Shown here: positions 3,512-38,618 of the stretch, in pieces
Layout: every line of letters begins with the position of its first letter
Numbering within the stretch: the stretch's first letter is position 1
Program-made: the position numbers and the translations under genes
Assembly (NCBI GenBank): GCA_977016875.1
Contig: CDRNST010000308.1
Coordinates: forward strand, 310,001-374,000
Direction: 5' to 3'
Source of the DNA: Pavona decussata
Taxonomy: Eukaryota
DNA: 64,000 bases
The notes under the pieces: generated by a model
The model's input: only the letters and a program-made list of their open reading frames with translations
Databases searched by the model: none
What the model was told of the DNA's origin: nothing

Positions 3512-6500
3512 ATGGGATGCTCTGCTTCGTTTCATCATCTTACTTCCTTGAAAAATGCGCTTCCCTCTACGCAAGATTTTAGAACCGTCCCCATTCCTTT
3601 CTCACGCAAGACTAAGGACACCTTACGAGAGTCCTGGGAACTTGTTGAACCAGTTAAAATAGAGGCGGGAAAAGCAATGTTTATGAAGTAAGTCAAACCC
3701 ATATAACCTTGTTAGGGGGGGGGGGGGGGTTAGTTTCTAAAAAAACTGTGGTGCTGTGCAGGTGTGTGTGTGTGTATGGTGTGGGGCGGGGGGGTGCATG
3801 GGAGGGGAGGGGAAACGAATGTTTACTTTTATCCAGAGTTGATAAGGTAATTTGATCACTGTAAAGATATCAGTCGAGAGCTGGCGCCTCGAGCGTTAGC
3901 CCTTCGTCAGAGTAAATAGCCCTATCAGTCGAACCATCAGAAATATTTTGGAGGCGTTGTGTTACATGAATCAAAGCTACTGAGCAAAATATTCCTGTGG
4001 TACTCTTCGTTATGATGGTTCTAACATCTGTATCCTTATGTTTGAAATTAAAGGTAGTTAAATATACCTTTCCTCTGGTCCTTTTCGTTTGCTGTACAAG
4101 GTGGTCCTGTATAGGTCTGTGTGTACAGCGGGTAGCTACGTCCCTGGATGGGGTTATATAACTAAATGACGATCGACTATTAGAGTGTTGGTGTTTTTGT
4201 TGTAATAGAGGGCTCCATAAAGAATTTTCTGCACAATTAGATGTCGAGGGAGATTGCAAACTTTGACTTTGGAAAAGTAGACGGCCAAAATTACAAAAAA
4301 AAAAACAACTAAGTAGCTAAGTAGTAACGACCATTTCTTTACTTTTAGACTCTTCCAGACACATCCCAATATCCAAGACACCTTCCCGTCATTCAAAGGT
4401 GTCACCCTTGATGAAATGATGAACTCGCGTTCGCTGTATCTTCACGCCAAACGAGTCATGGCCGCTGTAGAACAAACTATCTGCTCTTTAGATGACGCCG
4501 AAGTCTTAATTGAGACTCTTACGAAACTGGGTCGAAGACACCAGCCATGGTCCATCAATGAGGAGCATTTTAAGGTAAATAAGTTTATTGTGGTTTGCAT
4601 TCGGTCTGCATCGGAGCTTGTAACGACAAACTATGTCGGGGACGATCATTATTTGACAAGCGTGGTCTGGGATAATGTTTCTCCGGGTTTCAGTTCTGGG
4701 CCAATCCTCGCATCATTTGCCAGTCCGAGAATCAGATCACCTTTCTGAGTATTGTTTGTTGATTTTGATCTGTTTCTGATTCTGTCAGAAAACTCAATGT
4801 TAGCCTCCTGTCAACACGACTTAGTGGCTGGCATCTTTATCTATTGAATTGTATTGTGCATCTTTACTCAGTGATATGAAGGGTTCATCAGATTTGATTA
4901 CGAGTACCAGATTGAGTACGAGTACGACGTTTCAGATCTGGTTTTCTTGGTTTGGGTAACCGATGGTCACACCAATCCTGTTTTTGAGGTCTCCTTGTGT
5001 GCTGGTAAACAACGGGAAATGGGCAACAGTTCTGGGGATGTGACTGATTTGAAATATAAAAGTCGTATTCGTACTCAATCTCGTACTCGTACTCTGATCT
5101 GAAGGTCCCTAATTTATTATGTCTTGGCGGGACCCGGTTTTATTAAAGATTTAAATATTGATAGAAATAACCTATCTTTTACTACTTTTTGCTAAACCAT
5201 TCTCAGCGATTAAAACTGTTCAATTCAATGTTGTGCTAAATGCATTCCATTTATTACTTACTCACACCAAAGATAACTGGTCGCTAGCATTGGGGAACTA
5301 TTTACCACACATTACAGTGAACAATCTCGGAGTTTCTAGAAATTTTATCCGACTTTTATTTCAAGGGAGGCGGCAACTCAATTTCGAGGGAGAAGGCAAC
5401 TCAATTTTTAGGAGGCGGCGTGGTCCAACGATTTAGCGCACTGGACTTGAAATCCGGAGTCCCCGGGTTCAAGCCCCGTCCTTGGCCACGCTTGTATATA
5501 GCTAGCCTGCCAGTTGGGATTTTTTGAAACCTGTTATGTTTAATTTTATTATTTGTTTCCGTTATTTCTGAGTGGAATGCCTGTAAACCAGCTTTGGGTA
5601 GCTAATTGGATTGCCATTATAAAATAAAAAAAAGAAAAGAAAAGAGAATCACCTAAATTAGCCATTCCTCTGGGGAAGGGGAGCGGGATAGTCCTCGGAA
5701 TTTTTGTTGGGGGTGTTCGGCTCGGTTCTTCTATTTCAGACCAAAATATGTAATTTTTCGGTACCCATTATCAGACCTGGGGCCCGTTTCTCGAAAGACC
5801 GGTAACTTATCGGGCCCGATAAGTGTCTTTGGTAATAAACTGTTTCTAAACAGAAGTCAATTTTTGTTAGCTTTGAATACTAGATTTTTAAATCTTACAA
5901 TTTTATGAAAACATTGGCCAAGTATCATGTCTGTAATCACTGTGTAATCGGCGAAAATAACATTTAAAAATATACTTATCGGGCCCGGTTAGTTACCGGG
6001 AGTTTCGAGAAACGGGCTTCTGGACCGTCTATAATCCATACCCGTTTCTATAAAATCCATACATATTTTCAGACTTTCAGACCAAAATCTTTTGGCTGCA
6101 CATACCTTTTAATATAGCTTACATATCGAAAGATCCTCGCAGTTGTAACGCAACTTAAGCAGTTGCGAAAAGAAAGCCTGAAAAAAATTCAGGCTTGAAA
6201 GGGATGCCAGCGCAGTGCTCTATATATAGCTCACATAGGAAAGTACCCTCGGGGCCATTCCCCTGTACCGTCAAATCTGTAAACTGTCAAACTGAAGCTG
6301 AGAAACATAAGAAAACAGAGGAGAGGTAATTAATTTTGTGTACAGATAGCTAAACTGATCGATGATGACTTTGATGCAATAACTCTAAAACTTAAACACC
6401 ATAAGATAAAAAGTATCTAATTGATACATGCCGTTTCCTGTTACCCTTTTCTACACTTTTCGTACTACAACAATCTACACTTTTCATTTCTTTCCCTTCT

Positions 6501-6954
6501 TTTTATTTCCCTTTTGCTCTTTTTATAAATATTGTAAAAAATATGGCAGTGTATAACGTAATAATACAGGTTTAAGACTTCCCCGCCTCGACTAGCGTGG
6601 CTCAGATTTGCGGGTCAGTATAATATGTATATTATTTTCTGTAAATAAATAAATAAATAAATTGTTGTTGTTGTTGTTGTGGTTTCTTCAGTGTCCATTT
6701 GTTTACACGTCACTGCAGATTAAACAACTCATTGGTTGTCAAAAGTAAATCAAACTGTAACATGTGCATGGTTGAGATGAACTTTTTTTGTTCTTTGTTT
6801 GTTTGTTTATCAGGTTGTAGGTGAAGCCCTTCTGTGGACCTTGCAGGATATGCTTCAATCCAACTGCACAAGCCAAGTCATAGAGGCCTGGAAAGAGCTG
6901 TTTAATTTCATAACGAAATTGATGTTAAAGGGCGCCTGTTTAAATGATTTTTAA
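3512..6954 (+). CDS. Globin 1, N-acylated globin X/neuroglobin-like, 180 aa; exons 3512-3687, 4349-4574, 6814-6954
   Basis: Spliced by hand: MGCSASFHH...LRESWELVEPVKIEAGKAMFMK|LFQTHPNIQDTFPSFKGV...LYLHAKRVM...LGRRHQPWSINEEHFK|VVGEALLWTL...AWKELFNFITKLMLKGACLNDF*. GT-AG introns in phase 2 (B12.2) and phase 0 (G7.0); CD1 F, E7 H and F8 H present. Confidence 0.95.
4880..5111. mobile_element. MITE with TACGAG-rich TIRs
   Basis: GATTGAGTACGAGTACGAC ... GTCGTATTCGTACTCAATC; a related end occurs at ~58426-58475. Confidence 0.65.
5411..5610 (+). mobile_element. tRNA-derived SINE
   Basis: GGAGGCGGCGTGG...GGACTTGAAATCC...GGTTCAAGCCC head plus a body shared with 56245-56450. Confidence 0.75.
5779..6020. 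mobile_element. MITE nested within another repeat in globin 1 intron 2
   Basis: TIR GCCCGTTTCTCGAAA ... TTTCGAGAAACGGGC; the host repeat resembles 36785-37050. Confidence 0.75.
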
Positions 6955-7841
6955 TGTTAAATGTGATTTTTCCATTCTGCCTTGCCTTGCAAAATGCAAT
7001 TATAGAACATTCTTAACAGTAATCACCAGTTACTTGGGCTGCTATTGTGGTGACCTCAGCTGGGCTTTGACTATGGGCCATCTGATTCGTCGATCATTCA
7101 TCGATACCTCTTGTTGGCCAGGGTCCACAACACCGGTGTCTTTTGTAAGCAGGCCCATTTGCGTGGATGAAGGTCTCTCTCTCTACCGGTGTCCACGCGC
7201 GGGAGTCCACAACGCACGCTTAAGCTGGCCGTCTGACGGCTCGGGATGTCGTCTGCAGACCACGGTAGAGGTCAAGATTTGACAAATGCTCTCCTGACAT
7301 TTTTGGAACTGATCTCTCAGCATCATCGTAAAGCAACTATTAGTTCAGAGACTATTGCAGTTACATAGGAAAAATGGACGTGAATCTAATAGTATAAAAT
7401 GTAATAGCAGTACAAATGTAGTCTTTCCAACCTAGTTTCAATCTTATAATTTCAGTGTTTTTACAAAACGTTGCTTTATCGTTTTTTAAGCCAGTGTCAA
7501 ACTATCACAGTTACACATTTTAGTCATGAATCCTGGCTGCAAGTTTAGAATTTTTCTTTTAGTTTTCTAATGGCCATAAAAAGTTTTTCAGTGATGACTT
7601 CCCCTCTCTTCCCTGCACAAAGGTTATGCTTGTTCGTATTAGCTTATGTCCAAGTAAAAGAACGCGCCTGGCACATAATCCACAAGAATATTTAAAGTGG
7701 GTAAGCGTAAGTGTAAAGGACCAAACAATTTTCCTTTTTCTTATGCCTCCCAGCGTTTATTCTTACGTCTACGTTTATGCAGCTAGTGAGTATAAACGCT
7801 AGCTTAAACTTGAACATTAATATTCTTGTTATCTGTTGAAT

Positions 7842-7926
7842 ATTATATTTTGACCTGATGATGGTGTCATGAGGACACCAAAACGTTGTAAATATGATTC
7901 TACCCGTTATTTTCATCATCAAATTA
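7842..7926 (+). ncRNA. Penelope-type hammerhead motif, same family (GAAA mutated to AAAA)
   Basis: CTGATGA-T-GGTGTC-ATGAG-GACACC-AAAACGTT plus the shared downstream flank. Confidence 0.6.
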
Positions 7927-7959
7927 AAACTATCTACCTGCAATAAACCTTAGGTGGAC

Positions 7960-8680
7960 TTAAAGCAGGAGGAGTTAGTGAATCTGGCCCAGGTCAATAA
8001 TTCTACAACTATCCGGACTCAACTTCAGATCATAGAGTGGCCAGCATAACTTCACATAATAATTCTTAACTATGAAAGAATTGAATTCTGTTCGCATTAT
8101 TTTACAAATCCGTTTCGTGGTCTTTGAAGTTAGTTACTGGCCAATTTGTGAATTAAGTCAGTACACTCTTCAAGTGTATGACAGGTACAGTTAATCTGGA
8201 CCTCACCAAATACCTTAAACCTGCTGAAAGCTCCACATAAAATCTTAGACACGTAAATTATTCTTTTAAGACTAGATACGCGAGAACCGATATTTTAAAA
8301 TTTTCATATTTTAGAGGGTAGCTAAAACCTGGAATGAATTACCATTTTGTTTAAGAAAAATTGACTCTCTTACTGACTTTAGGAAAGGTCTGAAATCTTA
8401 TTTGCACAAGAAGGATGCTTCTGCAGATTACTGAAGCCATGAGCTATTGGTTTTATCAGACAGCATTTGAATTTAAATTTTAGTCTAGGTTAATCTTAAC
8501 TTTATCAACAGTATGTATAATTTATGTGATAATTTAGATGTTTGTAATGTCAACTTTTGATGTCATTTACTAATTAATCTAGGTAACACCACATTTGGGG
8601 AAGTACTTCCTGTTTAGGGTTTTCTCAATACACTTAATTTTCCCTTTGTTGTCAATGTAAAACATTAAAGTTTAAGTTAA
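7960..8680 (+). mobile_element. 5'-truncated LINE (CR1/L2-type) 3' end
   Basis: KTRYARTDILKFSYF...WNELPFCLRKIDSLTDFRKGLKSYL, then 3' UTR, ATTAAA and a short GTTAAA-like tail. Confidence 0.7.
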
Positions 8681-9757
8681 AGTAAGTTTTGATTTTCTTT
8701 TGCTTGCTCCTTTCCCGCCATCATGGTTCCAGTCATAAACTGGAATAAATCTCTCCAAGCGTTTGAGACTTCTTCAGTGCAGTCCTCACCAAGAATGTCT
8801 TTTAATGCTAAAATTAGGGCTTTTTCCATGACCTGACAAATTAAAAAAAGTCAGGTTTGTTCAAGATGCTGTACGTTTTAAGACGATACTCAAATCCACC
8901 GACAAACGATAAAACACACTTTTGCAACGAGCACGAGCATAAAAAAAACATGGCCCAGAATGCAATAGCGTGTTCACAAGCACAAGCGTAAGAAATGTTA
9001 TTTATCACCAATATCAGATGTCTATTCCTACACTTTGAAAAAATCATTAATTAATTTGCACATTCCTAAATCTAATTTGGGGATTGCTAACTGTAGCCTT
9101 CATTAAAAAGGATTTGTCTTCTGGAGCAACATCCCTGTCGAAGCAAGAGCTCAGAGTAGCTTTAGAACTTTTACATGAATCGTACTTACTAAATAACAGA
9201 AATGTTTTCAGTAAAGTTTCGGGTATATTTTATAAACATTGTAACTGTTGTTTTAAGTTATTTTAATTACCACAGCTCACAGGAAGACCATGTTTTTTCT
9301 TGTACATGTAAATGATTTTGATACAGTGTTTACATAAAGATAATGATGATGATGATGATGGTGATGGTAATGATGATGATGATGATATTTGAGAAAACGA
9401 GAAGCAGAAAAAGAAGCTTTTATCTTAGCTCTTTATTTCACATTTGTGTTTTTATTCTAGGTTTTGAGCCAAAGATTAGCTTATATTTGATTAGATTATG
9501 ATTAGATTAGATTAGATTAGACTAAATTAGATTAGATTGAATTAGATTAGATTAGATTAGATTAGATTAGATTAGATTAGATTAGATTAGATTAGATTAG
9601 ATTAGATTAGTTTAGATTAGATTAGATTAGATTAGATAAGATCAGATTAGATTTTATTATCACTGGTGTAAATTTTTAATGTGATTTTTGTTTGAATACT
9701 ATCTCATTGTAAAGCGCCATGAGCCATGGACATGGCGCTATATAAATCTTTTTATTA

Positions 9758-9796
<39 letters not shown>

Positions 9797-11054
9797 TAAC
9801 TCACCTTAAAATGCTTTTCAGTGATTGTGATTGCGCTATGTCTTTCACCCAGGGTCTTAAGATAATCAATGAAATCTTGCCCATCGTCTAGCGAAGAAAT
9901 AGCGTTTTCTACTGCCCCCATCAAACGCTTGGAGTGCAAGAATAAGGAGCGAGAGTTCATAAGCTCATCCAGCGAAACTCCTTTAAACGAAGGAAACGTA
10001 TCTTGTAGATCTGGATTCAGTTGCAGAAGTCTGCAAGAAGTGAAGAACAAAAGTATTATTACGGACGGTGCCTACTAGTTCCAAGGTATTTTTGCGTGGT
10101 TTATGAATATACGGGTAAAAATCTTGGAAAGAAGAAAAAAAATTGCGGAAAACCCCGCATTTTTCAAAGAAAATTAATCAACAATATTTGTAAAAAGCGC
10201 TAAAATACAGTAACAATGTATGGAATTTTTCTCCAATTTTAACTTAATTATCTCTGAAAATGCGCGGTTATCCCCACTTTTCTTTTCGGATTTCAATAAC
10301 ACTTGCTAAGATCTTCTTTTCCCTCATATTCAAAAACTGTGCAAAAACTACCTTTGAATTAGTAGGCAGTGTCCTAAAGAAATCCGAGCCTCTAGGACTT
10401 ACTTGAGATGCGCAGAGCGTATGCGTTGTAGCAAAAGTAGGCACCGTCCTTACTGTACAGTTTTCAAAAGTACAACATTGTTTCGACGTCTTCATGGCAT
10501 TATTGAAATGAGATAGAAAGGAGATCTAAGATGTATAATTTAATTTTATTTCCGCGTCTCCGAATGCTGAGAGACTTCGTAAGACGGACGGGATCAGACG
10601 GTGAGTTTGTGAATAAAAAGACATTCGACGTTGCATTTTTGAGAATTGAGAGTTCTTTTGCTTTCTTTTACAGATCATTGAATGCCTTGACTAAATCTTT
10701 AAAACAATTACAGAATGATAAACATTAGCATGATGTATATACAACAATTAATGTTACGTGTTTCAAAAGAAAAGAAAAGACCTGCATAAAAATAGGATTC
10801 GGGGGTTGACTTGCTCTCTAGACGAAAATAAGTTTTTATCCTAATTTGTTTCGGTCCCCGTTTAACAATCGCCTTTTCCATCAATCCCCCACCCCCCTCC
10901 CTTATCCGACCGGTGCATTTTCTGACTAAAAATGCCGTAATTCTGAACTTTATTTAACGTGGGAAAACAAGCGCCCAGTTATACGGTTTAGTTCAAAAAC
11001 TGCACTGGCTAGTTTACAGGCATGCCACGATAAAAATAAATAAATAAATAAATA

Positions 11055-11117
<63 letters not shown>

Positions 11118-11389
11118 AACTATATACAGGATAAAAAGCAGTTTATGGATGCTACATCATTGTAGTATTGATTCATTTACTAAAAGTAATATTGTTCTTT
11201 GGAAAACTGAACTTGTTACCTGACAAATATGTTCCTTCCAAACACGTATTTTTCTTCTTCCAGACTTTTCCAAGATGCCCTCAAGATGTTTTTGTGTGCA
11301 TCGGAAACTGGCAGTGAAACAGCTTTGCTTGACACCTTAGGATAAATCGAGGGTCTTTTCTTTACGTGCTGAGATGCAGCACAGCCCAT
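8677..11389 (-). CDS. Globin 2, N-acylated globin X/neuroglobin-like, 183 aa; exons 11389-11220, 10030-9805, 8832-8677
   Basis: MGCAASQHVKKRPS...LRASWKSLEEEKYVFGRNIFVR|LLQLNPDLQDTFPSFKGV...LFLHSKRLM...LGERHSAITITEKHFK|VMEKALILALKDILG...AWRDLFQFMTGTMMAGKEQAKENQNLL*. Same intron phases; 226-bp middle exon. Confidence 0.94.
9490..9652. repeat. (TTAGA)n microsatellite
   Basis: Direct inspection; lies in globin 2 intron 2. Confidence 0.95.
10059..10452. mobile_element. MITE in globin 2 intron 1, about 30 bp from the exon 2 acceptor
   Basis: GGACGGTGCCTACT ... AGTAGGCACCGTCC TIR, with a second internal end at ~10361-10377. Confidence 0.75.
11034..11118. repeat. (AAAT)n(CAAT)n microsatellite
   Basis: Direct inspection. 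Confidence 0.95.
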
Positions 11390-11476
11390 AGCTGAAGTAT
11401 TGGGTATTTACTAAACAGTTTAGAACAGAGAAAAATAGCAAGCCGTTAATAATGCAAAAGAAGATCATAAAAAGGG

Positions 11477-11663
11477 TATAAACCATATTCCAAAATGGCT
11501 TCCATTTTAATATTCTTTTGTTCGCAATCAAATTAGCCCTTCTTGCCTCGTTCAAGGTAAAATATTATTTTGATTTTTGAGCTTAAGAACGAGGCAAGAA
11601 GAGCTAATTTAAATACCAACAAAAAAATATTAAAATAGTAGCCATTTTGGAATAAGGTCTATA
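11477..11663. mobile_element. Fold-back MITE just upstream of the globin 2 start
   Basis: Near-complete hairpin (TATTCCAAAATGGCT...AGCCATTTTGGAATA; TCTTGCCTCGTTC...GAACGAGGCAAGA); related element at 46366-46547. Confidence 0.8.
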
Positions 11664-19707: not shown

Positions 19708-20911
19708 TTACGGTGACTGCAGTCCTTTTACCATTGTGCTTGAAATGAAACGGAACAATTTATTCCACGCTTCTTCTGTTTCTGGTGTCCATTGGTGATT
19801 TAACAGTTCTTTTAAGGCCTCCATCAGGGATTCCTGCATTGCCTGCGGAGATGAACAATCGAGAACGTGAACGAGGCTTGTAAACGTGAAAGGTATTGAA
19901 TTCCGTGCTTATTCACATCATAGAAAAATTCATGTACGGGTGTGTTTGATCAATTACGGCTATTTGCGATAGCGACTATTATTGGACATGCCACATAAAC
20001 AGGCATAAGTCTTAAATGTAAGCACAGTTGATTTATTTACAGTTGAACTTGACTTTAGATGATGAAGATGGGATTTTTAATCGTCAAATCGACGTAGGGA
20101 ATATCAAGAAGTTAATCCAAGATCGATAAATCGACGGTTTTGATCTTCAACGCCTTGCGAACAAACGGCCCAATTCTACCGTAAGTTACAAAGCCGAGCC
20201 GATCGAAGGCGAAGGTGGTCGACTGTTCGTTTGAATTTTCAAATAAACTGAGAACTGTGCAAGGTTAATGCATTTCTTCGGCCATTTGAGGTCAGTAGTT
20301 GTAGTTACTGAATTTTTGTCGTTTCTTATGCCAATAACCGCAAAATTTCCCGCTTAATAGTTTATACTGTCTACCTGCTGTTTACATAGCATGTGGGAAA
20401 AAAAACCCGCGCTATTCTCTGGTATGCATGTAACGCTGAAAGTGGCTTTTGGTATATGCATCAATATTTCCTTACATCGAGATACACGGGCTTCAATGCA
20501 CGGGCCTTATGTCTCCTGCCTAGTTCCTCCAAGTAACCAGCAAAGCTAAATGCATCGTCCAATGAGGACACAGCATTCTCCACAGCTTTCATGACACGTT
20601 TGGCGTGACCGTAAAGCGCGCTCGTGTTTTCCAGCTCCGCCGGATCCACGCCTTTAAATTCCGGGAACAGCTTTTGGTACTCTGGGTTTTGCTGAAAAAA
20701 TCTAAAACAACGTAAAGTCAAATGAGTACAAATACGCTACTTCTCTGTAATGTGAATACTGGAATACTGAGAATCTAGTGTAAATTATCATCCGGTTGAG
20801 TGTAGTCCTGAAAAAGACTGTCTGTGGTGACATTGACTGACGTTTGGACAACCTGGGTCGACGTCATCGTCACACATCATGGAACATAGCGCAACAACTA
20901 CAACAACAACA

Positions 20912-20943
<32 letters not shown>

Positions 20944-22897
20944 GATGATGATGATCATGATGATAATGTTGATGATGATATTTAGTCAGAAGGCGCCTCT
21001 CACCATGGTGATTTTTGCCCATGGCCCTTCCGATCACCATAGCAACGTGAAAAAAAGCAAAAGTACAAAGGCCTCTGTGAATTACACGTTTTGCTTTTGC
21101 TTAGTCTTGCGTTAGAATTATGCTGGTGAAACCAGACAGTCGTGTGGGGCCGCCTCTTGAATGAACTCGTTGTTAACGTACCGTTAAACGTTATCAGTAG
21201 AATGAATATTCGAGACTTAAAAATAATGCTTTATCTTCTTATGTCAAAGACGTTCTACCTTTTAATTATAAGGGTGAATTTAACCATCACTTGAAACTGT
21301 TGAGTACTACTTTTCTTCAAGTCGTAGTGTTATTTGATATTTTGTAAGAAGATTCTTGTAACGTTTGATTATTTAAATAAAAGCGATCAAGTAGTGATTC
21401 CATGTGATCTTTTTGTTTTGTTATTTTTTGCAATTTTTAAAATATTTTAGTTTTTAAGCTGTCGTATATTATAAGAGTAAAGAGGTTGTCTTAAGGGAGC
21501 ATTAAATGTTTCAAAATTCAAAGATTTTAGTGCTCTAATTATTTGTCATTTGGGAATTATGGCGGCAAAAAGTTTTGATAGATAGCATAAAACAACATTC
21601 ATCTCAGTATCTGCCGCCGCGAGCGACTTAGCATCAAACACATCATGTTTGAAAATCATCGAATCTGCAATTTTGTTCTTCATTTCTTTTGCCGAAAGAA
21701 AGGGTCGTACAATTGGCGTCTCAGTATAGCCGGCTGAAAGCAAGGCCAGCGCGACAGAAATAGTTACAAGCAAACGAACTAAGCTTCATGTTGACTTCTT
21801 GTTATTTTATCGCGTCACAGAAGTTAAATACACCTGCTGTAGTCTCAAAATACTTCCAATTTGCACTTGTTGGTTACTTTAAAAAAATAACCGGAGATAC
21901 AGTGTAATATTGCGTTTCGTTTGAGTTGCGTGAATTTAAGGAGCAGCCCTAACCATCTGCAGTAGAGAAATAATAATAAAAAAATGGAAGACAGGAAGTT
22001 TGGAGTTTCAAGCAAGCACACGAGATCGACTTGCTTTCAACAGCTACCTTATAGCAACCGCTTTACGATTTAAACTTGGTCAAATGTACAGCATAATGGT
22101 AATTCTCTCCTGAAAGGAGCGAAATTATTGCCAATATGTGTGCGAAAAGGATTTCAGGCAGTTCAATAGTTGTGGTAATTATTCATAAGCTGAGCTTTCT
22201 CATAACCCTCTGTTAGGAGATTACTCTGTTTTAGCAATTTCCATTATGTCATATTCACGTGAAAGGGAAAGCATTATTTTCCTTATATTTAATTATGAAG
22301 GAATACAACAGAAGAGCCAACTTGTTGAAATTACTACTCAAAGTCTAAGGGGTCAAGTTTGTGAATTACAAGCAAGAAAGACTGAATGAATATTAAAGTG
22401 CCTAGCGGCGAAAGTTGTTCAGAAATGACAAAGGTTTAAAACAGAGAAAGACGATTTAGTGAGTAGTATGGTATGGTCATAAGCGTGTAATGTATGCCCA
22501 ATAATTTAACGATTGTGGTGATAACTTTTGTCTGTGTTTGTGAGTGATTCAGCAAGAAATATTAACAATTTCTTGCCGGCTACGCACAACAGAAATAAAT
22601 TATTATCTTAACTTATTTCAAGTGAGGATTTCACCGAGAAAGAACCGTGAATCGATCTTACTGATCGCAAGATGTGCAGACTATTCTACTCGTTCTGTAA
22701 TCTGTGCGTCTCGGTAGTAGCTTCAGAATCCTTTCGATCAAAATAAACAGTGGTTACCTTAGAAACGTCTTTTTCCCGACGTTGTTTTTGTGTTGTTCCA
22801 CAGTCTCCCATGTCTCTCTGACAAGAGATTTCTGTGTTTCCGACAGCGGCAACGAAATATGGCCACCTTTGTGGCCCACAGAAGACGAACACCCCAT
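19708..22897 (-). CDS. Globin 3, N-acylated globin X/neuroglobin-like, 166 aa; exons 22897-22758, 20701-20476, 19842-19708
   Basis: MGCSSSVGHKGG...VRETWETVEQHKNNVGKKTFLR|FFQQNPEYQKLFPEFKG...ALYGHAKRVM...LGRRHKARALKPVYLD|AMQESLMEALKELLNHQWTPETEEAWNKLFRFISSTMVKGLQSP*. Canonical splice sites. Confidence 0.95.
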
Positions 22898-27293: not shown

Positions 27294-30200
27294 ATGGGAT
27301 GTGGGTCATCAGCGAGTCGCAAGAGTCAAGACAAAATCGCCTTAATTCAGCTCTCCGCTGCCCAAAAGTACCTGGTGCGCGAAACATGGGAGATAGTTGA
27401 TCTTCATAAGAATTCTGTGGGAAAGAAAACTTTTATGAAGTAAGTACATAAAGCTTGTTTTTATCTGCGTCATTATAATCACAACATGGTTTCCTTTGCG
27501 TTTTTTTAATGTTTGTAAAGTAACCACTTGAACAAATTCATTTTATGTCTCCAATAGACCAAAACCATCAAACGCGTAAGGTGGAGTTTGTGATCTTCAT
27601 TGAAATATTGAGAGTATAAAGAAAGATTGTGGCGTAGAAGCCCCTTGTTTGTAATTCTGTCAGTAATTTGCATATTCAGAATAAACTGCTCAGGATTACA
27701 ATTTTCCCTAAATACGAACACACTGCAAAATTTGTTCTAAGCCATTTTCCCCTGAGGTCTGTGTTAGTAATAACTATCTAGCGTCATGGATACTGATTTA
27801 CAGATTTAAGTTTCATTATTTCGTCGGATTCCATCTCCAAGCAGTGTAAAATGGTGTATGCTAAGTAGAACGAGCATACAGTTTTTTAAAACAATAACGA
27901 AAAAACTGTGATTTGAGCAATCACAGCTGCCAAAACTATAAACTACACTTTTTTAACTTCTGATTATTTTATTTATAACTGAATACCAGATGAAAAATTA
28001 ACCTACACTGTACTGCTCTGCAAAAAAAATATGCGCGTAGAGTCATCGCATTTGAAAAAATAGAAAGGGAAGTCTAGTTGTAAGTCTCTAATGTTAACGG
28101 AAAATGCGTTACATTGTGAATCAAACAAAGCTGACGAAAATGATTCTCAGGCAAAACAAATAACTTATATATATCCCTTAACAGATATGCTTAAAAAGTC
28201 ATTAACTTACCGTAATCGTTTTGGAAAAAACGATTTTCTTTGTTGGAGATGCGAAACGTTAGAATGAACTGCGTTCACTGCTTAAATAACTCTTAACTTT
28301 ACATTGGGTGGGTTATTTAATGCGTTTATTTCCATATGATAATTTATCTAATTTCAACATTTTCTCATCATCAAGGCCGAAAATCGTTTTTAATTCACTC
28401 AGTAAATATTAAGAAGAAATGTTCTGAATAATTAATGTCCTTACTTCTTTGTTTCGTTATGGTAGCTCGAAGTATGTAATTACAGTAACTTTAGAAAGAA
28501 ATTAAAAAATTTTAGATGACTGTTTGTCAACTAAAATGCAATTAAAGGCCTCAATTCCAAATCAGAAACGTCTCTAGTTTTAAGCTGTTAAGCAAGACGT
28601 TACAACCCAAGAGTAATATTCAAAAATAACGTAAAAATCTCCACTACAGGGGGAAATACTCAAATAATACTCAAATATAAATACTCAAATATAAATAAAT
28701 ACTCAAATTTCCGTTATCTTGAATCAATTTCCCTGCTGGTGCCATTCAGGTTACTGATTTAGAATTCGCAAAATAATAGTTTGCACAACACTGATTGGTG
28801 AAACGGGTAAAATATTTCTGCTATTTGTTGACGATTTCTTTCCAAACCAAATTTTGGCAACCATACATTTTGCGCAAAAATAACGAAAACCGTTCATTTT
28901 TAATAAAGAAAATTAATATGCAGAGCTTTTTTATATTAAACTGTCACAACTGTCGCCAAAAACGCAAAGAGTAAAACATGAGAACAAAAGCTAAACCTTA
29001 ACAATGAAACAGTTAGTAAATAGTATTTTATTAAAGTTAACACGCCCTCTTATGAAGTAAACCTTGATTCACGCCAAGGGTTGATAGCGGGAAGTACGCG
29101 TATAATTTGTAAAAAGCAAATCAAAGCAATAACGTTTTGTATAAAAAGATCGGCCGGGAAAATTATTCAAACAATGTATAAATTAAGCTGAAATGTCGCA
29201 TTAAAATACTCAATTTTAGGTCGTATATTCCCTTATGCAGAGATATTTTATTTTTTCGAGGATATTAACAATGACAAGTTTCGCATTATTACAGCAGTTA
29301 CCAGTAACACGTGACCAATCTCCTTCAAAAGAGTCTGAAAAAGTTGCGTTTTGGTCGACATCAAGCAAACAAAAGCCGTTGAAATTGTTTTGAATTCTGA
29401 CAATATTTCAAGGCAACAGAAAAGAGAAATTGACAGTTTTATCCGATGACAGATGGTAAACTTTATCAAAGTTGATTTCCAAGCCAGTTTATGTGAAACA
29501 AAGGGCATCATTTAGAGGATAAAATCAGCGATGTGTGCGAGTTAGCAAGTTATCACGTGCAGTGACATTTTAAATTTTTAATTCAAAACTACCCTTTTCT
29601 TTTCGCATGATCTGACTCGGAAATCAATTTAAATAAGGTTTTACGTTCTTTCTTATGAGGTAAATTTCTCAGTTTCTTGCACGGTTGCCTTGAAACCTTG
29701 TCAGAATTCAAAATAATTTCCACTTGTTTTCTTTGATTGACGTTCATCATAACGGAACTTTCTCCGACTATTTTGGAGGTGGTAGGTCGAGTGCTTTTGG
29801 TAATAATAATAAACCCAGCACCAGCACAGCCAGCGGTTGCAACACAATGCGCTATTTGTGTTCCCATGTGAAAGTGAGTTCTAGCAGAGCGTTTTTAAAG
29901 CAAATATCAGGATTACTTTTCAATAGTTTTTTCTTTTGATAATCAGCAGCTGTTGAATTGTTTTCACCACACCCATTACAAAGCCTCGGATTCATACCCG
30001 GTTACGCATTGAAACTGGGAATACGTTTCGGCCAAATGGTTGGGATTTCGGGCATAATTCGACCAAAAATTTCCAAATATCTAATTACTGTTTACTCCCC
30101 GAACTTGCAAAAAACATCTTCAGCTAAACAACAATAGAACACGGCGTGCACTTTGAGTGCAGAACTTGATTTAGCCCCGTGTAATGTTGCTTCTAAAACG

Positions 30201-30675
30201 CTAATTAATTTCAAATGCCATGCAATCGTGAAGTTAGGTAGATCCAACCTTTGAGTCGCTAAACATAACACTCTTGTGTTATCGTCCAGATGAAAACTGT
30301 TTAGCAATGGTGTTGTAGGTGTTTTTTATCTTTAGCAAAAACAAATGATAGCTATGATGTGAACGTTTTCCGCTCATGCAGCCCCAATAGGAAAAATACA
30401 TATTCTGCGATGTTCAGGGATAGCCTCACATCCAGGTCTGTGAAAATTTTGCATCACTGATACATGAAAGAATTCACGAAAGAGACTCAGCTGGAGTGAG
30501 AGTGTGAGAATTTTGGATTTAACAGCTGTAAAGGATACGTGGTTTGAAATGCTACAGTAAAGAAAAAATGAGGTATTAAACACAGCAAAAAGAAAAATGG
30601 CAATGATAATATTGAGGAAATTCGTAGCTGTTTTGACCTGTTTTCTACTAATCTTAGTTTACTGATAAAATGAAA

Positions 30676-30708
<33 letters not shown>

Positions 30709-33164
30709 TTATAAACTTACTATAGCCTTTTAATATAAAAATGTTCAAAAGCGCTTTAAAAAAACATTAGTAAATAGACTAGATAAAAACGAAACAAAAA
30801 TTCCTAGGCTTCTTTGAAACTTTGAAAGTAAACAAAAGAAATATTAAAAACTACTAAAAACTAGCTAAAAGCTAACCTAAAAAGATAAGCTTTTATATAT
30901 TTCTTAAAAGCGCCAAGTGGTTCTATCTCACGGATATGCGCGGGAAGGCTGTTCCACAGCCTAGGTGCGCCAGCGTAAAAAGAACAAGCGCCCAAAGTTG
31001 TGAGCATGTAATGTAGAGGTCTTCACCGTCATCCGTTCGCTAAGCACGCTCTTTTTCTTTTTCTTTTTCAAACCTTCCCAAATAATTTTCTCTTCCATCG
31101 TAAGCAGTGCCCAACTCGAAAGTAGCATGCTCCTTTGGGCACTGCTCACACTAAACCAAACAAATTTATCCTAATTCTTTTTAATCCTCCTTGTAATATA
31201 AATGTTTATTTTTTTTATGTATTGTATTGAATCTCGTTGTACGTGTGAAAAATGAAATTGAATTGAATTGAATTGTATGCGCCAGGCCCCTCTGGACGAT
31301 CTAAAAATATTGTATAATTCGATTGCAATGAATATGCAGAACAGGACCTAATGCTGACTTAAAAGTGATAATTGATATTTTAAAATTGTGTGTAGGATGC
31401 TGACGCACGTGCCAGCTGTGTAAATTTGCACAATTCCTGATTAATACGAGGCAAAGCCAGCTTGATGAGTCATTATAGTATTTTTAGGTAAGGCCAATAA
31501 AAGTTAATGGACCCGATACCTAACTTCTCTAAAAAATTCAGAAGGTGATTCCAATGCCACAGGTTCGTGAAAGCTTGTAAATAGCCGCCCACTTTCTTCC
31601 AAAAAACCCTTTGCCCTTCCCTTCAAGTTTTAAGTTCTAGTCAGAGTTTCTATAGAAGAGACAGTCTCCATTTAAAAAGGAACAATTTACAATATTGCAT
31701 TTTGTCCACTGTTTATAGATTCTTTGAAACCAATCCAGAATACCAGCGACTATTTCCAGAGTTTAAAGATGTACCTCCCTCGGAGCTGGAAAAAACGAAC
31801 GCCTTATATGGGCATGCTAAGAGAGTAATGAAAGCTGTAGAAAATGCGGTGTCTGCTTTGGATGACGCGGAGAGTTTTGGCGCGTATTTAGAAGAGCTGG
31901 GGCGGAGGCATAAAACTCGAGCCTTGAAACCAATCTACCTTGATGTAAGTCCAAAAAGCAAACACACCTTAACATTTGCTTTCAACTACTATTTTGTGGA
32001 CTCCATCGTGTCTAGATCTTATTTGAAGAAATGTTTTACAATCCAATTCAATCGTCAATATGGCTACGTTAAAGGAAACCTCCACTACAATACAATACTT
32101 TATTCATTCTCCCCGAGGGGTTTTTCAGAATAAATTAATAATCCACTCTTGAAAAAAATCAACCTGAAATTGTTGAAAAAGCAATCTAGTTACAAATTTC
32201 GTTGGAAAACATGGAAATAATTTTTCTGTATCGGACAAAACAGGATTTGATTATCGCCCATTTTCCCTTTAAATTTCCCGGGCGTCACAATCTTGGATAA
32301 CGTAATACGGTTGCTCAATTGTTTCACTCAAGACAACTTCTGCTTACTGACAATAGCGGCAACCGTATGACGTCATTAAAACAAAAATGGCGACGCCCGG
32401 GAAATTTAAAAGCGAAAATAGGGGATAATCATACCTAATTTTTAATATACTTGAATGTTATTCCTACTTTTGAAGCTAAAATTTTAGAATTTAGACGCTA
32501 TTTGCAACAATCTAATTTAATTTAATTTGCTGTCGGAATGGAGGTTCCTTTAAGGCCAAAGATAAAGCCCAAACTGTAACTTGTGTCTTCAGCTCCGAGA
32601 CCAACATGCACATTCTTCTCACTGTTCTCTAGAATTTTCTTGTGGTTCTAGTTAGGAGAATTTGTTTAAACATCAAGCTTTGGCGATGACGTCCATTAGT
32701 CCTATTACAGTTAATTCCATTCACAAACATCAGGCCATAAAGTTGGTCATATTACAAATGAGTGCTTAAATAGACGGGGTTTTAAGTGAGAAAAAGGCTG
32801 CACGTATGACGAGGTTGGTTGTTAATCAGCAAACTCTACTCCAAAATGCGAGGTGAATCCTACTCTCCAGTCTCCCTCTCTCCACCGAAAAATGCCAGAT
32901 CAACCGGTAGATAGCAAATATAACTTCTGTTTCAGTCGACAAATTGTGAGGTGTACTTTCCTCTCCGCTCCTCCACACAAACAACGAAACATACTAGATA
33001 ACGGTTTAATATTAAATACTATTTATTTCCAGTCCATGCAAACCGCTTTGATGTCCACTCTTGAAGACTTGCTTAAGTCAAGCTGGACCCAGGAGACCGC
33101 GGAGGCCTGGAACAAGCTGTTTGAGTTTGTCAAAGATAAGATGATTCTTGGCCTGCAGTCATAG
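27294..33164 (+). CDS. Globin 4, N-acylated globin X/neuroglobin-like, 167 aa; exons 27294-27439, 31719-31944, 33033-33164
   Basis: MGCGSSASRKSQ...VRETWEIVDLHKNSVGKKTFMK|FFETNPEYQRLFPEFKD...ALYGHAKRVM...LGRRHKTRALKPIYLD|SMQTALMSTLEDLLKSSWTQETAEAWNKLFEFVKDKMILGLQS*. Canonical splice sites. Confidence 0.95.
30676..30995 (-). mobile_element. L2-like LINE 3' end with (TTA)n tail, in globin 4 intron 1
   Basis: APRLWNSLPAHIREIEPLGAFKKYIKAYLF on the minus strand, followed by 3' UTR and a microsatellite tail. Confidence 0.7.
32073..32549. mobile_element. Kolobok-like MITE in globin 4 intron 2
   Basis: TTAA|AGGAAACCTCCA ... TGGAGGTTCCT|TTAA, with an internal inverted repeat at ~32249-32430. Confidence 0.8.
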
Positions 33165-34362
33165 TGAAGCAAAACTTGTACTGGATAAAGATTGTGCCGG
33201 CACAAGTTTGGCTATTAAAGGAGCTATACTTAACATTTGCTGTTCGAATGAATTTCCATCATAAGCATTTTGATTTTCATCATGTTATTAACTAGAGTTA
33301 TTAACTAGGGATCATTGTTCGTTTTGCTAGCCTTTTTTTATGACTATAGTGTGTACTATCAATGACTTGACGAGACTAATATTTTATGAACATGTTTGCT
33401 TTATTCCTGTTATGTATAATTACCGCGCGTTGTACGTATATGTTTTTTAGTCGCTGTACTCAGACAGTAATATCACTGCTGTCGTCAAAAAGTTGTAAGC
33501 GCACGTAATGGCGTGACGGCCTAAAGCCTGTTATTTTTCTTATTATAAGGAGTTTTTCTGTAAATGATGTTAAAATTAGTGGGTCACACAACTTATTTGC
33601 TGCCAACAAATTTTTTGGTTGAATTATCGAATTAGCGTCAATGCCTTTGGTGCATTACCGAGCTACAGGATAGCTTGTTGTAAATACAAGTTTCAAATAA
33701 AGTGTTCAACACTCGCTGTTTAGAGAACGGTGAGTAGTGATATACTTTTTACAAAATATAAAATATATGCACAAATAAAAAACTTCCGTGACGCTGATCT
33801 GCGGTTGTTTCGGTATACAAACTACTGTTTGGTGGCTTTCTCTCTACCGTCGCCATACGAGGTTGCATAAGTGACTTGCGGTCCCATTTAGTAATAAGCC
33901 ACCAATACTCTGGTGATTAGCTTTCCTTTTTCTACACCCATTCAAGATGGTGAAAATTTTCTAAACTTACTCTGTCGAGATCCTACCTTATTATTGGCAA
34001 AGGGACTGCTAATAGTAAAAAAACAAGGAAAAGAACAGCAAAAGTGAGATTACTAATATAAAGTTAACCTTGCCTCAAAGACTTTGATGACGTTCCCTGA
34101 TAGGTTCTCATATATTGGCACGAAATCGGTTCACATTAAGAGAGGGTGCTTGATGCATGCACACTCTGTAATTTGGAGCCAAATTTCCTTCTACTACATC
34201 TCAATTTTGAAACGCGAAAAAACTCTTTCCAAAGTTCCAGACTATAGTACTTTGAAATACAAACAATGCTGTTGACTTTTTAATTAGTGGCTTCCCTAAG
34301 ACTTTTACCTTATTAAGACTAAGAGATTAGCCACATGCCATGAATTTCACTCACAACTTGGC

Positions 34363-37300
34363 TTAAGTGTCTTGCAGGCCTATTTTTATTGCTACAAACA
34401 TAAATTGGAATAAAGCACTCCAGGCTTCAAATGTTTCTGTTGTCCACTTTGACTGAAAGAGTTCCTTTAATGACGTCATCAGTGCTTCGTGTATCACCTA
34501 AGGTTGAGAAACAAGAATATTAAATGGCTGACTGAACAAAAGAACGAACGAAAGAAAGAAATGAACAAAGGGAAGAAAGGATGAATATATGGCTGAAGGG
34601 ATGGATGGTTTAAGAAAAAAAGAATATGAAAAATAAAAATAATGAAAGACCTAAGGGAAGGAATGAACGGATGAATGAAAAAATGAACGAGCGACCGAAC
34701 GAATGAATGAAAGAATTGATGAACGAACGAAGAAAGGAATGAATGAATACATAAATGTATGAATGTACGAGNNNNNNNNNNNNNNNNNNNNNNNNNNNNN
34801 NNNNNNNNNNNNNNNNNNNNNNNNNNNNNNNNNNNNNNNNNNNNNNNNNNNNNNNNNNNNNNNNNNNNNNNNNNNNNNNNNNNNNNNNNNNNNNNNNNNN
34901 NNNNNNNNNNNNNNNNNNNNNNNNNNNNNNNNNNNNNNNNNNNNNNNNNNNNNNNNNNNNNNNNNNNNNNNNNNNNNNNNNNNNNNNNNNNNNNNNNNNN
35001 NNNNNNNNNNNNNNNNNNNNNNNNNNNNNNNNNNNNNNNNNNNNNNNNNNNNNNNNNNNNNNNNNNNNNNNNAATGAACGAATGGACCAGTGAATGAAAG
35101 AACGAACGAACGAAAATTGAGAGCAGGGGATCAGGTTCCGTTTATACAAGATCCACTCTGATTCACTCTCAAGAAAGAGTCACTTATTAGACAGCGAAAT
35201 GCTCACTCACACCTTGCAGAATGCAGCGGTTTTCTGTCCTCTAAAGCAATTTTTTTTCGAAATCTTGACGCACCGCACTCTTAGACAAGTCGGTGCTCTT
35301 AGCATTGTTAACTTCATCTCAAGTAAAATTTGATCTCACCTAATAATCGTTGCAATTTGACAGCAAACAATACCTCCTCCAGATTTTACGACAATGTAGT
35401 CACCGACACAACACTCACCTCCAAGTACTGAGCTTTAAGTGGTCTGACCTGATGTCTTCGTCCAAGTTCCACCAGGTAACTAACAAAGCTTTCACTGTCA
35501 TCCAAGGAAAGTACTGCGTTTTCAATACACTTCATGAGTATCTTACTATGGCCGGACAGCGTCCGCGTTGATTTGAGCTGCTCAATGTCAACCTTCCCAG
35601 GAAACATGTGCATCAACTCGGGTCTTGCTTCAAAAACTCTGTAGAGAAAGATGAAGTGTATACTAAATTAGTGAAATGAGTCTCGCTATGTTTACAGCAC
35701 GAGAATGAATCTTTATTCCTAATCAGTCATGTAAGCCTGCTTTCTCGTGACATCTTTTATAACAGCTCCAGAACTGCGGGGGCGGATTTTTTTTGGGAGG
35801 GGGGGGGGGATGGAGAAGGGTGGAGGGGCCCGCCCCCTTTTGTATATCTAAAAAGTTTTTGTAATCGTCTTTCGAATGGTGTTATGAAATCAATCATTTT
35901 TAAAAATCCTCTTGCACTCTTGCCACAGTTTCGTCGGCTCCCTCTTTATGGATTTTCTGGATTGAAGTGTAACTGTTGAGAGCAAACAATTAGGGAGGAA
36001 GACAAGCGTCTACTTTTTCACGAGAACGTAATCAAATTACAACTTTATAGGTGTTTTTCACACGTAATAATAACCATTGCCAATCATAGTTTCGTTACAA
36101 CAAAGGCTCTGTTACTTCTCGGAGTTTTCAGAGGAATCGGGCAGTATTCTGCCAAAGCAGTAAAAAAAAAAACTTTGTCAGAGGTTGCAACTACGCGAGC
36201 CAGTTTCTTTGAAAATTTGTTTCAAATATTTTGACTTGTTCGTCTGCGATAGGCCAACTAGTTGTTAAAAGGTGAACCGGGTTTTTTCTATATATCTAAA
36301 AGAGAAAACTTGTTAAAGGAAAACTTGGCCGATATTACCATACACACCAGAACATAAATCTTGCAGATTTTTATAACTAGCTGCCTGTTTAGAATTCTCA
36401 CATGTAACACGGCCTTTTATCGAATGCATGGAGCGGCAGTTGTGTTTAAGTGCGAAACTGCTCGGCGGAGAGACCGACTACATTTGATCTTCAGATCTGC
36501 AAGCAAAATCTGTTTTATTCTATAAATATTCCATTACATTTTTAATAAATAAAAATAAATAAACTATTGCAGTTTACAAGAAGGATGCTATTACTAATAT
36601 ATTCAATGGTTACTGTACGCGTTAAGGAGATTTTAGCCTTTCAGGTGAGAGACAGTCTGGCTGCACTCTCTTACATTATTTTACGTCAGGTAACTCAAAT
36701 GCATCAGCACAGCATTTTCAGAGTAAATTTCACTGACATTTTTTTGTAGCGAGTTCAACGTTTTTGTTTGTCAGAACTCCCCCTTGGGGGTACTCTTCGT
36801 AATTTTTGCTGGGGGTGAGCGACCGGTTCTCCAAACCCTGATTCTATTTCAGACCAAAACATGTATAAATTTTGCGATAGCCTTTTTCAGACCCGACCTC
36901 TCAAACTCGTACCCATTTTTAAACCTGGTTTGCATAATCCATAGCTGCAGTTTCTGTTAAATCCATAACCGTTTTCAGACTCAAAAATCATACATACCCT
37001 TAGGGGTCGCACGTACCTATTTAGGTTATATGGGAGAACATCCCCCCGCCATCTTGGGCATCAGACATGCAGATATTAAACTTGAGATCTCCGAGATTTA
37101 CTTGATGGGATTTCCAAATTATAGACATTTTTAGTAACAACGAGGTTGTAAAAGTATGCTCGTGACATTTCCTTGAAATTCAAATATTCGAAAATGTTCT
37201 TGATTTAGGACGACAAAAATCAATTGAATCTTGTCTGTCAGCAAACGTCACTCAAAACTCCAACCAACTGGCCAGTAATAGGTTCGGGTCACGTGCAATC

Positions 37301-38618
37301 TGTAAATTATATTCTGATCCTTATAATTGTTAATAAACGCTGTCTTCACTAATCGCAATGTTTTATTTTTGGTTACATACCAAGGGTAAAGAAAGGATAA
37401 TTCCGGTCAAAATCTCAATTCAGAAGTCCTCATAAAAGTCTGATATTCGGATTTACGGACTGTAATTAAATCGCACGTTGAAGTTCCGGAAATGGAAAAT
37501 TAAGGTCCGCAAATTGTTTTATGAGAGATAAGAATAGACCAATTTCGATATTATAATATTGAAATTCATACTTGGGTACGAATCTTAGAGGAATAAAACA
37601 ACAGAAATGAGGTTTAGAGATGAATAATTAATTTCTTTTGTTTTATTCTTCTAGGCCTCGTAGTCAAACTAGAATTTTAATATATCGAGATTGGTCTATT
37701 GTCGATCTCCGTACCAAATAAGTTCAGATGGAGCTATTGGAAATTAGAATAACTATATTCATTGTTTAAAATCGTCTAACACCCAAGATGAAGAAAGTCA
37801 AAAGAACAAAAGCTACTCGATGACCAAATAAATAACGATTTTGAACGCCTTAAAACAATGAGGAGAGGATACACGAAATCTATGCATTTGATCACGTTTT
37901 GTGTAGGGTGTCTCTGATAAATGTTTCTGATAAAAAAGAGAGATGCATATTCCATTTTGAAGATGCATAAAGCATTTTTTAAACAACTTTCGTTCGACTG
38001 AGCTCTTTAGTTTATTTGTTTATTTTATTATATTTTCCGGCCGTTTTTCTCATTACTATGCAAAGAACAAAATTTTGACAAAGTAGAATATTTTGTATCA
38101 GATCAAATTAATTGAACATACGTGTTAAAACAATGGCAGATGAAAGTCAACTTTTCTGTTTACAGGTTTTCCGACTTTAGATAAATGTTTAAATTCTACA
38201 ATTAATGCAGTTGCCAAAAAAAAAAAAGCCTCAGTCGCGTATTGACCTGAATTTCAATATTTTCGGAACACGGAACACAGAGCGGTAAAGAATGCAAATT
38301 TATGCACTTTCATTAGGTAGCAGCTTTGTAAACAGTGAACTTAGTTTCAACACATTTTAAGAATTAAACTTGAGGAAGCCACTTAATCTTTCAGTTTTTG
38401 ACTTGAATTTGTAAAAGTATTGTTTCTTTTTCTTATTTTCTGCTTACTGTTTCGAATTCTTACCTTAAAAATGTTTGTTTTCCGACTGTTGTTCGATTCT
38501 CGTCGATCATGCTCCATGTTTCTTTAATTATTGTCTTGTGCGTGTCGGAAATACTGACCGGTAAATCTTGAGGACTGAACAGTTTGGCTTTCGGTTGCAT
38601 TGAAGATGTGCAACCCAT
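34363..38618 (-). CDS. Globin 5, divergent N-acylated globin, 169 aa; exons 38618-38464, 35638-35419, 34497-34363
   Basis: MGCTSSMQPKAK...IKETWSMIDENRTTVGKQTFLR|VFEARPELMHMFPGKVD...LSGHSKILM...LGRRHQVRPLKAQYLE|VIHEALMTSLKELFQSKWTTETFEAWSALFQFMFVAIKIGLQDT*. Middle exon is 220 bp; intron 2 contains the N gap. Confidence 0.93.
34772..35072. other. Assembly gap (301 N) inside a GAAT/GAAC low-complexity repeat
   Basis: N run flanked by (GAAT/GAAC)-like repeats spanning ~34530-35115. Confidence 0.99.
37533..37700. mobile_element. Small MITE in globin 5 intron 1
   Basis: AATAGACCAATTTCGATAT ... ATATCGAGATTGGTCTATT. Confidence 0.7.

Follow-up and report, generated by a model that had tools for sequence, protein, structure and literature searches.

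What would an animal without blood do with five neighboring globin genes, each with a product that opens with an apparent membrane-anchoring signal? The question is raised by a window of 64 kb of Pavona decussata DNA (the whole stretch analyzed; G000:C308:310001-374000, part of a 602-Mb assembly), in which an earlier reading made without database searches (the sequence-only reading) had noticed five complete globin genes whose products start with Met-Gly-Cys-x-x-Ser (MGCxxS), and had proposed a globin locus in an animal probably lacking blood. Both parts of this proposal hold: the five globin genes, here named g1 to g5, are real, intact, and neighboring, each has an MGCxxS opening, and their nearest relatives are found in scleractinian corals. 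The locus is interpreted here, with considerable confidence, as a tandem cluster, conserved in scleractinians, of five paralogous genes of old origin that encode single-domain 3-on-3 globins, which are probably lipid-anchored.

A six-frame scan of the 64 kb found exactly five MGC..S strings, at 3512(+), 11389(-), 22897(-), 27294(+), and 38618(-), with the outermost two forming the bounds of the cluster as first noticed; by a rough estimate, about 0.3 such strings per window would be expected by chance. In that order, the openings are MGCSAS, MGCAAS, MGCSSS, MGCGSS, and MGCTSS, and reading through residue 7 they are MGCSASF, MGCAASQ, MGCSSSV, MGCGSSA, and MGCTSSM. The frames in the window matching the Pfam Globin model (PF00042) also number five (32–59 bits; cut-off 22) and are the second exons of the same genes, and a genome-wide frame search with this model recovered the same five loci in the window. 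The resulting gene models are as follows, with exons given in the order of transcription and lengths in amino acids (aa).

3512–6954, plus strand: g1, globin with an MGCSAS start, 180 aa; exons 3512–3687, 4349–4574, and 6814–6954 (with the stop codon).
8677–11389, minus strand: g2, globin with an MGCAAS start, 183 aa; exons 11389–11220, 10030–9805, and 8832–8677.
19708–22897, minus strand: g3, globin with an MGCSSS start, 166 aa; exons 22897–22758, 20701–20476, and 19842–19708.
27294–33164, plus strand: g4, globin with an MGCGSS start, 167 aa; exons 27294–27439, 31719–31944, and 33033–33164.
34363–38618, minus strand: g5, globin with an MGCTSS start, 169 aa; exons 38618–38464, 35638–35419, and 34497–34363.

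Thus, g2 is convergent with g1, and g4 is divergent from g3 and convergent with g5. The same architecture was observed in all five genes: the first exon ends at a phase-2 donor of the ..A(A/G)|GTAAG type, the second exon starts directly after an ..AG acceptor with one A that completes the split Lys/Arg codon and closes at a phase-0 GT donor, and the third exon, located by similarity, is preceded by a CAG or TAG acceptor. For g1, the donors are GTAAGT and GTAAAT, and the acceptors are TAG and CAG. When the exons were joined at their canonical GT-AG sites by a local script, all five products were in frame, with the introns at B12.2 (phase 2) and G7.0 (phase 0), which are classical for globin genes. 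Individual second exons scored 55.8 bits (g1), 48.4 bits (g2), and 59.1 bits (g3) against Pfam Globin. The scan, the Pfam matches, and the in-frame GT-AG models together bear out a cluster of five complete MGCxxS globins. A tblastn search of the five models against the window returned the 15 exons only, with no extra copies, pseudo-exons, or other significant globin fragment, and no further long open reading frame lies between the globin genes in the window. Throughout the analysis, databases were searched with single exons, exon frames, or full-length orthologs, and the spliced models were used in local alignments, tblastn, dN/dS calculations, and trees. The introns of g2 also contain simple-sequence arrays, namely (AGATT)36 at 9473–9653, (TTA)15 at 9752–9796, and (AATC)21 at 11035–11117.

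Gly2 together with a small residue at position 6 forms the signal recognized by N-myristoyltransferase (NMT), and an adjacent Cys is a palmitoylation site. All five openings agree with the NMT consensus, having Met1-Gly2, a small uncharged residue at position 6, and no Pro at position 7, with Cys3 in place for palmitoylation; they also fit the PROSITE N-myristoylation pattern, G-{EDRKHPFYW}-x(2)-[STAGCN]-{P}. Upstream of the MGC ATG, each of the five genes has an in-frame stop at a distance of 21–66 nt, with no in-frame ATG in between and with a purine at position -3. Likewise, in a transcript contig of the Acropora ortholog of g3 (L012), the leader measures 154 nt and contains an in-frame stop at -27. 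Across 17 aligned orthologs from corals and anemones, M1, G2, C3, and S6 are invariant, whereas the linker behind the MGCxxS motif (residues 7 to ~25) varies freely in both sequence and length, suggesting that selection acts on the acylation signal itself. The dual-acylation signal (Gly2/Cys3/Ser6) ascribed to all five proteins by the sequence-only reading is therefore confirmed as a sequence signal.

The key heme residues are likewise preserved. Phe B10, Phe CD1, His E7, and His F8 occur in all five products, as seen in an alignment of the five, with Phe B10 lying two residues ahead of the B12 intron codon and with the contexts ..F-P-x-F for CD1, ..H-[AS]-K-R/I.. for E7, and ..G-[RE]-R-H.. 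for F8. In a HMMER alignment of the Acropora g3 ortholog with cytoglobin, these residues fall on Leu B10, the distal His, and the proximal His, and the earlier assignment of the four residues thus stands on both the alignment and its anchoring to cytoglobin. An AlphaFold2 (AF2) run was made on the ortholog alignment, of which the first sequence is P0020 (Acropora Cytoglobin-1; 87% identical to g3). The model of P0020 has a predicted local distance difference test score (pLDDT) of 88.6 and shows a full globin fold after the N-terminus, which is itself unstructured, with pLDDT <50 over residues 4–11 and no helix before residue 20. A Foldseek search with this model gave fish and human cytoglobin, neuroglobin, and a tardigrade hexacoordinate globin as the best solved matches, with template modeling (TM) scores over those matches of up to 0.85 (query) and 0.92 (target); against cytoglobin, the TM score was 0.85. 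Scores above the model cut-off, Phe CD1, His F8, and the fold place the products among the Pfam PF00042/3-on-3 globins. With His E7 present and hexacoordinate globins as the nearest folds, the heme iron may be bis-His coordinated.

Evidence for splicing comes from contigs of four sequencing runs, which carry no strand and were aligned to positions 31650–37649 of the window. One run, X1, has the same organism label as the DNA runs containing the locus, and its kind is given as 'RNA?'. A 538-nt X1 contig joins 35419 to 34497, corresponding to g5 intron 2 (CT..AC, cut +4, 921 nt skipped; GT..AG on the minus strand), and continues past g5 exon 2 for 227 nt, that is, exon 1 (155 nt) plus 72 nt. A 1821-nt X1 contig joins 31944 to 33033 (GT..AG), which is g4 intron 2 exactly, and carries ahead of g4 exon 2 a further 202 nt, that is, exon 1 (146 nt) plus 56 nt. 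The division of these 202 nt (g4) and 227 nt (g5) into exon 1 and a leader is by length only. Among the predicted introns, spliced X1 contigs thus confirm g4 intron 2 and g5 intron 2. Two further features of this region matter for the reading of g4 and g5.

34772–35072: N gap inside g5 intron 2, between exon 2 (ending at 35419) and exon 3 (starting at 34497).
33165–34425: transcribed stretch behind g4, the 3' untranslated region of g4, g5, or both, covered without a break by the 1821-nt X1 contig.

Being intronic, the gap leaves the g5 reading frame unaffected, and since an X1 contig joins the exons flanking it, the sequences on either side are parts of a single transcription unit. The gap is adjoined at 34657–34748 by a tandem repeat rich in GAAC/GAAT, which is likely its cause. 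The 1821-nt contig extends from g4 exon 3 for ~1.26 kb to 34425, inside g5 exon 3, so that the 3' ends of these two convergent transcripts either overlap or directly adjoin each other; a sense-antisense overlap could be formed there. Three metatranscriptome runs labeled 'coral metagenome' (X13-X15) matched 41-nt repeat pieces but no globin exons, and are uninformative on expression. Very high summed depth from unrelated coral metatranscriptomes was observed at 32050–32450, 36820–36870, and 37600–37650, and these stretches are probably interspersed repeats in the g4 and g5 introns. P0048, a sequence 100% identical to g1 exon 2, was considered as proof of a g1 transcript and rejected, because it runs unspliced through exon 2 and into the introns on both sides; it derives from four short Logan contigs, and its intron-derived parts differ from the window (perhaps those of a close relative).

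Searches with the stop-to-stop frames of the second exons returned anthozoan proteins only, from Stylophora, Porites, Oculina, Desmophyllum, Acropora, Montipora, Orbicella, Pocillopora, Actinia, and Nematostella. The coral orthologs bear the automatic NCBI names globin-1-like, cytoglobin-like, cytoglobin-2-like, and neuroglobin-like, and nearly all full-length matches open with MGCxxS. A profile search of 1.84 billion representatives yielded 8503 relatives; this search was dominated by multi-domain globins, and single-domain matches alone were used. Among the best 150 of the 8503, 49 are single-domain, of which 18 start with MGC and 10 with MG and another residue.

In an IQ-TREE phylogeny of 62 rows (supports given as ultrafast bootstrap / Shimodaira–Hasegawa-like approximate likelihood-ratio test), from which eight rows had been left out beforehand (five flagged as very long in a quick tree and three chosen), g1–g5 fall into one anthozoan clade (100/97) together with a further MGC globin of this genome, the C132 gene (MGCTHS) described below. 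Each of the five genes has its own stony-coral ortholog group, with supports of 99/95 (g1), 100/99 (g2), 97/92 (g3), 100/99 (g4), and 100/99 (g5). The g1 group contains Oculina, Desmophyllum, Pocillopora, and Stylophora. For g2, exon-2 relatives with 74–87% identity occur in other coral assemblies, and a full ortholog (MGCVRS) is present in the coral assembly L020; before this ortholog joined the tree, the branch of g2 was longer than those of the other four genes. In the g3 and g4 groups, Acropora/Montipora/Porites-type and Pocillopora/Orbicella/Desmophyllum-type corals are both represented, and orthologs of g5 were found in Acropora (P0118) and Orbicella (P0213). Sea anemones are represented as well: the g1/g2 group includes the Nematostella 'neuroglobin-1' P0092 (100/98), the group of the C132 gene includes an Exaiptasia globin deposited by Smith et al., and the Actinia and Nematostella g3/g4 orthologs stand beside both groups with polytomous placement. 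Thus, the g1/g2, g5, C132-type, and g3/g4 lineages appear to have arisen before, or at about the time of, the divergence of corals and anemones, and the g3-g4 duplication would predate the radiation of living stony corals. The protein identities of 31–68% among the paralogs and the saturated synonymous divergence (dS) between g3 and g4, from which that duplication is not datable, agree with old lineages. Purifying selection is apparent for g3, which gave dN 0.076, dS 1.59, and dN/dS 0.048 against L012; the Acropora g3 ortholog is represented by many short Logan contigs, with L012 holding its unbroken spliced coding sequence.

The arrangement of the genes is conserved among stony corals. On contig MU826353.1 of Desmophyllum pertusum (L010), genes resembling g5, g4, and g3 match the window in both their order and their relative orientations. 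Farther on, this contig carries OS493_008835 (MGCTAS), two more MGC genes, and two g1-like genes (008841 and 008842), amounting to at least 8 globin genes within ~454–549 kb of MU826353.1. In a third coral assembly, L020, the orthologs of g2 (MGCVRS) and g1 (MGCSAS) lie tail to tail, as in the window. The same co-occurrence is suggested for three or four more assemblies by matches on contigs of equal length, which is a proxy only. At the g3 locus of A. digitifera, no second globin was found within 10 kb on either side. In Nematostella, a g3/g4-like gene at 4.69 Mb and a g1/g2-like gene at 15.34 Mb lie on one chromosome, 10.6 Mb apart and unclustered. About 9 kb downstream of the former there is a PAN_1/F5_F8_type_C gene (L008:20963-22194), and in the window a PAN/apple gene family occupies 45873–62984, beginning ~7 kb beyond g5; the presence of a PAN gene near globins in both may be a trace of old microsynteny. 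A GFP-family gene lies ~5.5 kb upstream of the Nematostella g1/g2-like globin (L017:827-4438).

Four globin loci were found elsewhere in this genome (C132, C60, C57, and C142), giving the coral at least 9 globin genes, at least 7 of them with an MGC start. All four have introns at the same two positions as g1–g5.

L004:5922-6092 plus L007:929-3157 (G000:C132, ~2.632–2.637 Mb): sixth MGC globin, MGCTHS, 176 aa.
L003:6998-9965 (G000:C60, ~5.533–5.536 Mb): seventh MGC globin, MGCGGS, 223 aa.
L005 plus L001 (G000:C57): globin with an MPEAAR start and no acylation motif, with the same two introns.
L006 plus L002 (G000:C142): globin with the same two intron positions.

About 2.6 kb downstream of the end of the C132 gene lies a decayed copy of its first exon (L007:5786-6091), in which MGCTHS is intact and followed by two in-frame stops. 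The C60 globin has an N-terminal extension of ~75 residues rich in Lys, Glu, and Thr, as well as Gln in place of His at E7, and may be the counterpart of the 'pentacoordinate' Gln E7 anemone group of PMC6077788. A motif search within ~9 kb upstream of the C142 gene found no exon 1.

Among characterized relatives, the closest are globins of sea anemones. Smith et al. (2018; PMC6077788) reported an MGC 'GbX membrane binding motif' (GbX, globin X) in six Actinia and seven Exaiptasia globins, and described the motif in most sea-anemone globins, together with B12.2/G7.0 introns, tissue-specific expression, and a moderately supported sister relation between GbX and an anthozoan clade. In the same study, three to five globins were found in Acropora digitifera, the one coral studied, the motif was absent from most non-anemone cnidarian globins, and the expansion was greatest in Actiniaria. 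Song et al. (2020; PMC7771090) noted that a membrane-bound state is predicted for most sea-anemone globins and left the anemone clade unclassified. The anemone MGC globins (e.g., Actinia tenebrosa AUV50079 and Exaiptasia AUV50091) fall into the same anthozoan clade as the coral genes (100/97) and share with them the MGC opening, the B12.2/G7.0 introns, CD1 Phe, E7 His/Gln, and F8 His. In contrast to the picture given by PMC6077788, however, the coral studied here has at least nine globins, at least seven of them with MGC, and five of these are packed into 35 kb, a clustering conserved in stony corals, unlike the two located homologs in Nematostella, which are 10.6 Mb apart.

The sequence-only reading had called the five proteins globin X-type, a designation that holds as a functional likeness, whereas orthology is not supported. 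In zebrafish globin X, which is hexacoordinate and for which a non-respiratory role has been proposed, Gly2 and Cys3 are both required for membrane localization (Blank et al., 2011; PMC3176823), and a passage of PMC8525914 cites the reduction of nitrite by GbX (Corti et al., 2016). The coral globins likewise have the Met-Gly-Cys signal on an extension before helix A and a pocket with His E7 and His F8, and similar roles can be proposed for both, namely membrane protection, redox signaling, and nitrite reduction. The reptile MGC proteins P0168 and P0175, annotated as neuroglobin-like, are probably globin X; they belong to a separate 15-row MG/MGC clade (100/99), whose relation to the anthozoan clade is a polytomy in the IQ-TREE phylogeny. 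These reptile proteins are 221–222 aa long, compared with 166–183 aa for the coral globins. Furthermore, the coral genes have two introns only, whereas GbX genes reportedly have extra introns beyond B12.2 and G7.0.

A functional precedent, likened here by description only, is provided by GLB-26 and GLB-12 of C. elegans, which passages of PMC3520999 and PMC4686822 describe as N-myristoylated (GLB-12 also as palmitoylated), membrane-bound, and engaged in redox signaling rather than in O2 supply; the acylated globins of C. elegans represent a nematode-specific radiation (PMC7771090). With respect to sequence and fold, cytoglobin and neuroglobin (6q6p, 4mpm, and 2dc3), which are of the hexacoordinate type, are the best solved matches, with an E value of 3e-18 to cytoglobin, TM scores of up to 0.85 (query) and 0.89 (target), and an identity of just 26–28%. 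Unlike the coral globins, they are cytosolic or nuclear and have no acylation signal.

Taken with these precedents, the conserved motif points to a product consisting of a heme domain on a flexible, poorly conserved tail of ~15–35 residues that starts with Met-Gly-Cys-x-x-Ser. The initiator Met would be removed and Gly2 N-myristoylated during translation, Cys3 would be S-palmitoylated after this myristoylation, and the neuroglobin/cytoglobin-like heme domain would thereby be tethered to the cytoplasmic face of cellular membranes. Its most likely task would be redox chemistry, such as protection against reactive oxygen species (ROS) or lipid peroxides, turnover of nitrite and nitric oxide (NO), or redox signaling, and not bulk O2 transport. 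The five paralogs may have become subfunctionalized by cell type or condition.

Several observations weigh against this interpretation of the locus as a cluster of functional, lipid-anchored globins. The NCBI ortholog models P0009, P0010, P0021, P0050, and P0055 start at an ATG upstream of MGC, and such a start, if used, would bury Gly2; putative acceptor sites located ~30 nt before the ATGs of g1 and g4 would allow for additional 5' exons; and no report of acylation, localization, or heme spectroscopy of any cnidarian globin was found in the literature searched. These points would fit genes that are real and encode ordinary cytosolic neuroglobin-like globins, with MGCxxS not acylated or with translation starting upstream. 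This is nevertheless improbable, as the N-terminal extensions of the NCBI models differ from species to species and are not conserved, in-frame stops stand just upstream of MGC in all five genes and in L012, and M1, G2, C3, and S6 are kept in corals and anemones next to a linker that is not. The same upstream-starting NCBI isoforms, however, are a hint that Gly2 might at times be masked. It is conceivable, though rather unlikely, that this is an ancient hexacorallian membrane globin locus with subfunctionalized members, in which anchoring may be regulated via alternative first exons or starts that mask Gly2 and via the overlapping 3' ends of g4 and g5; if true, corals would have a tunable membrane-bound system for handling O2, NO, and ROS, of which present models of their oxygen and redox physiology take no account. 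As to expression, splicing was observed for g4 and g5, the two genes in the stretch to which the runs were aligned, and the assignment of X1 as RNA is a guess, in favor of which the spliced contigs themselves argue. A cluster in which at least one of g1–g3 is a silent or decaying duplicate, to which the initially long branch of g2 might also point, is very improbable given that the frames are intact, the splice sites canonical, and the key heme residues present in all five, that each gene has conserved orthologs in other corals, and that g3 combines its low dN/dS with an Acropora ortholog whose spliced coding sequence is unbroken.

The proposed lipid-anchored cluster is also to be weighed against readings that concern its origin. 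That the copies are assembly artefacts (haplotigs or collapsed or duplicated sequence) has next to no probability in spite of the gap inside the region, since their divergence already refutes it, dS has reached saturation between g3 and g4, every copy belongs to an ortholog group of its own, the gene order is kept in two other assemblies, and the gap falls in an intron across which a spliced contig runs. That the cluster specifically equips a photosymbiotic host for oxygen changes between day and night, which the sequence-only reading had considered plausible, is highly doubtful. The diverse repertoire would suit it; a literature search combining coral hypoxia or symbiosis with globin or neuroglobin gave nothing usable, and no coral globin expression study was found in the literature searched. 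Moreover, Desmophyllum pertusum, a cold- or deep-water coral not known to have algal symbionts, has the same cluster in collinear and even larger form, and the paralog groups reach the sea anemones, including the presumably non-symbiotic Nematostella. The photosymbiosis rationale is therefore unsupported.

The finding is less novel than had been assumed, as the MGC motif, the B12.2/G7.0 introns, and the affinity with GbX were published in 2018 (PMC6077788) and the coral orthologs are annotated in NCBI, and no new kind of molecule or mechanism is revealed here. Within these limits, the new elements are correct models of five coral genes, the conservation of their tight clustering across stony corals, and a coral repertoire as large and as rich in MGC as that of anemones; in the open literature searched, a single paper on cnidarian globins was found and none on coral globins. 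Corals have no blood, experience large swings in oxygen and ROS, and have globins that are essentially unstudied, and the five verified models can be used for asking whether lipid-anchored globins protect membranes or signal redox state. The view of globin expansion and the MGC motif as mainly sea-anemone features is also corrected. Overall, the coral cluster supports the idea that membrane-bound globins are ancient in animals, which a passage of PMC7771090 attributes to Blank and Burmester (2012).

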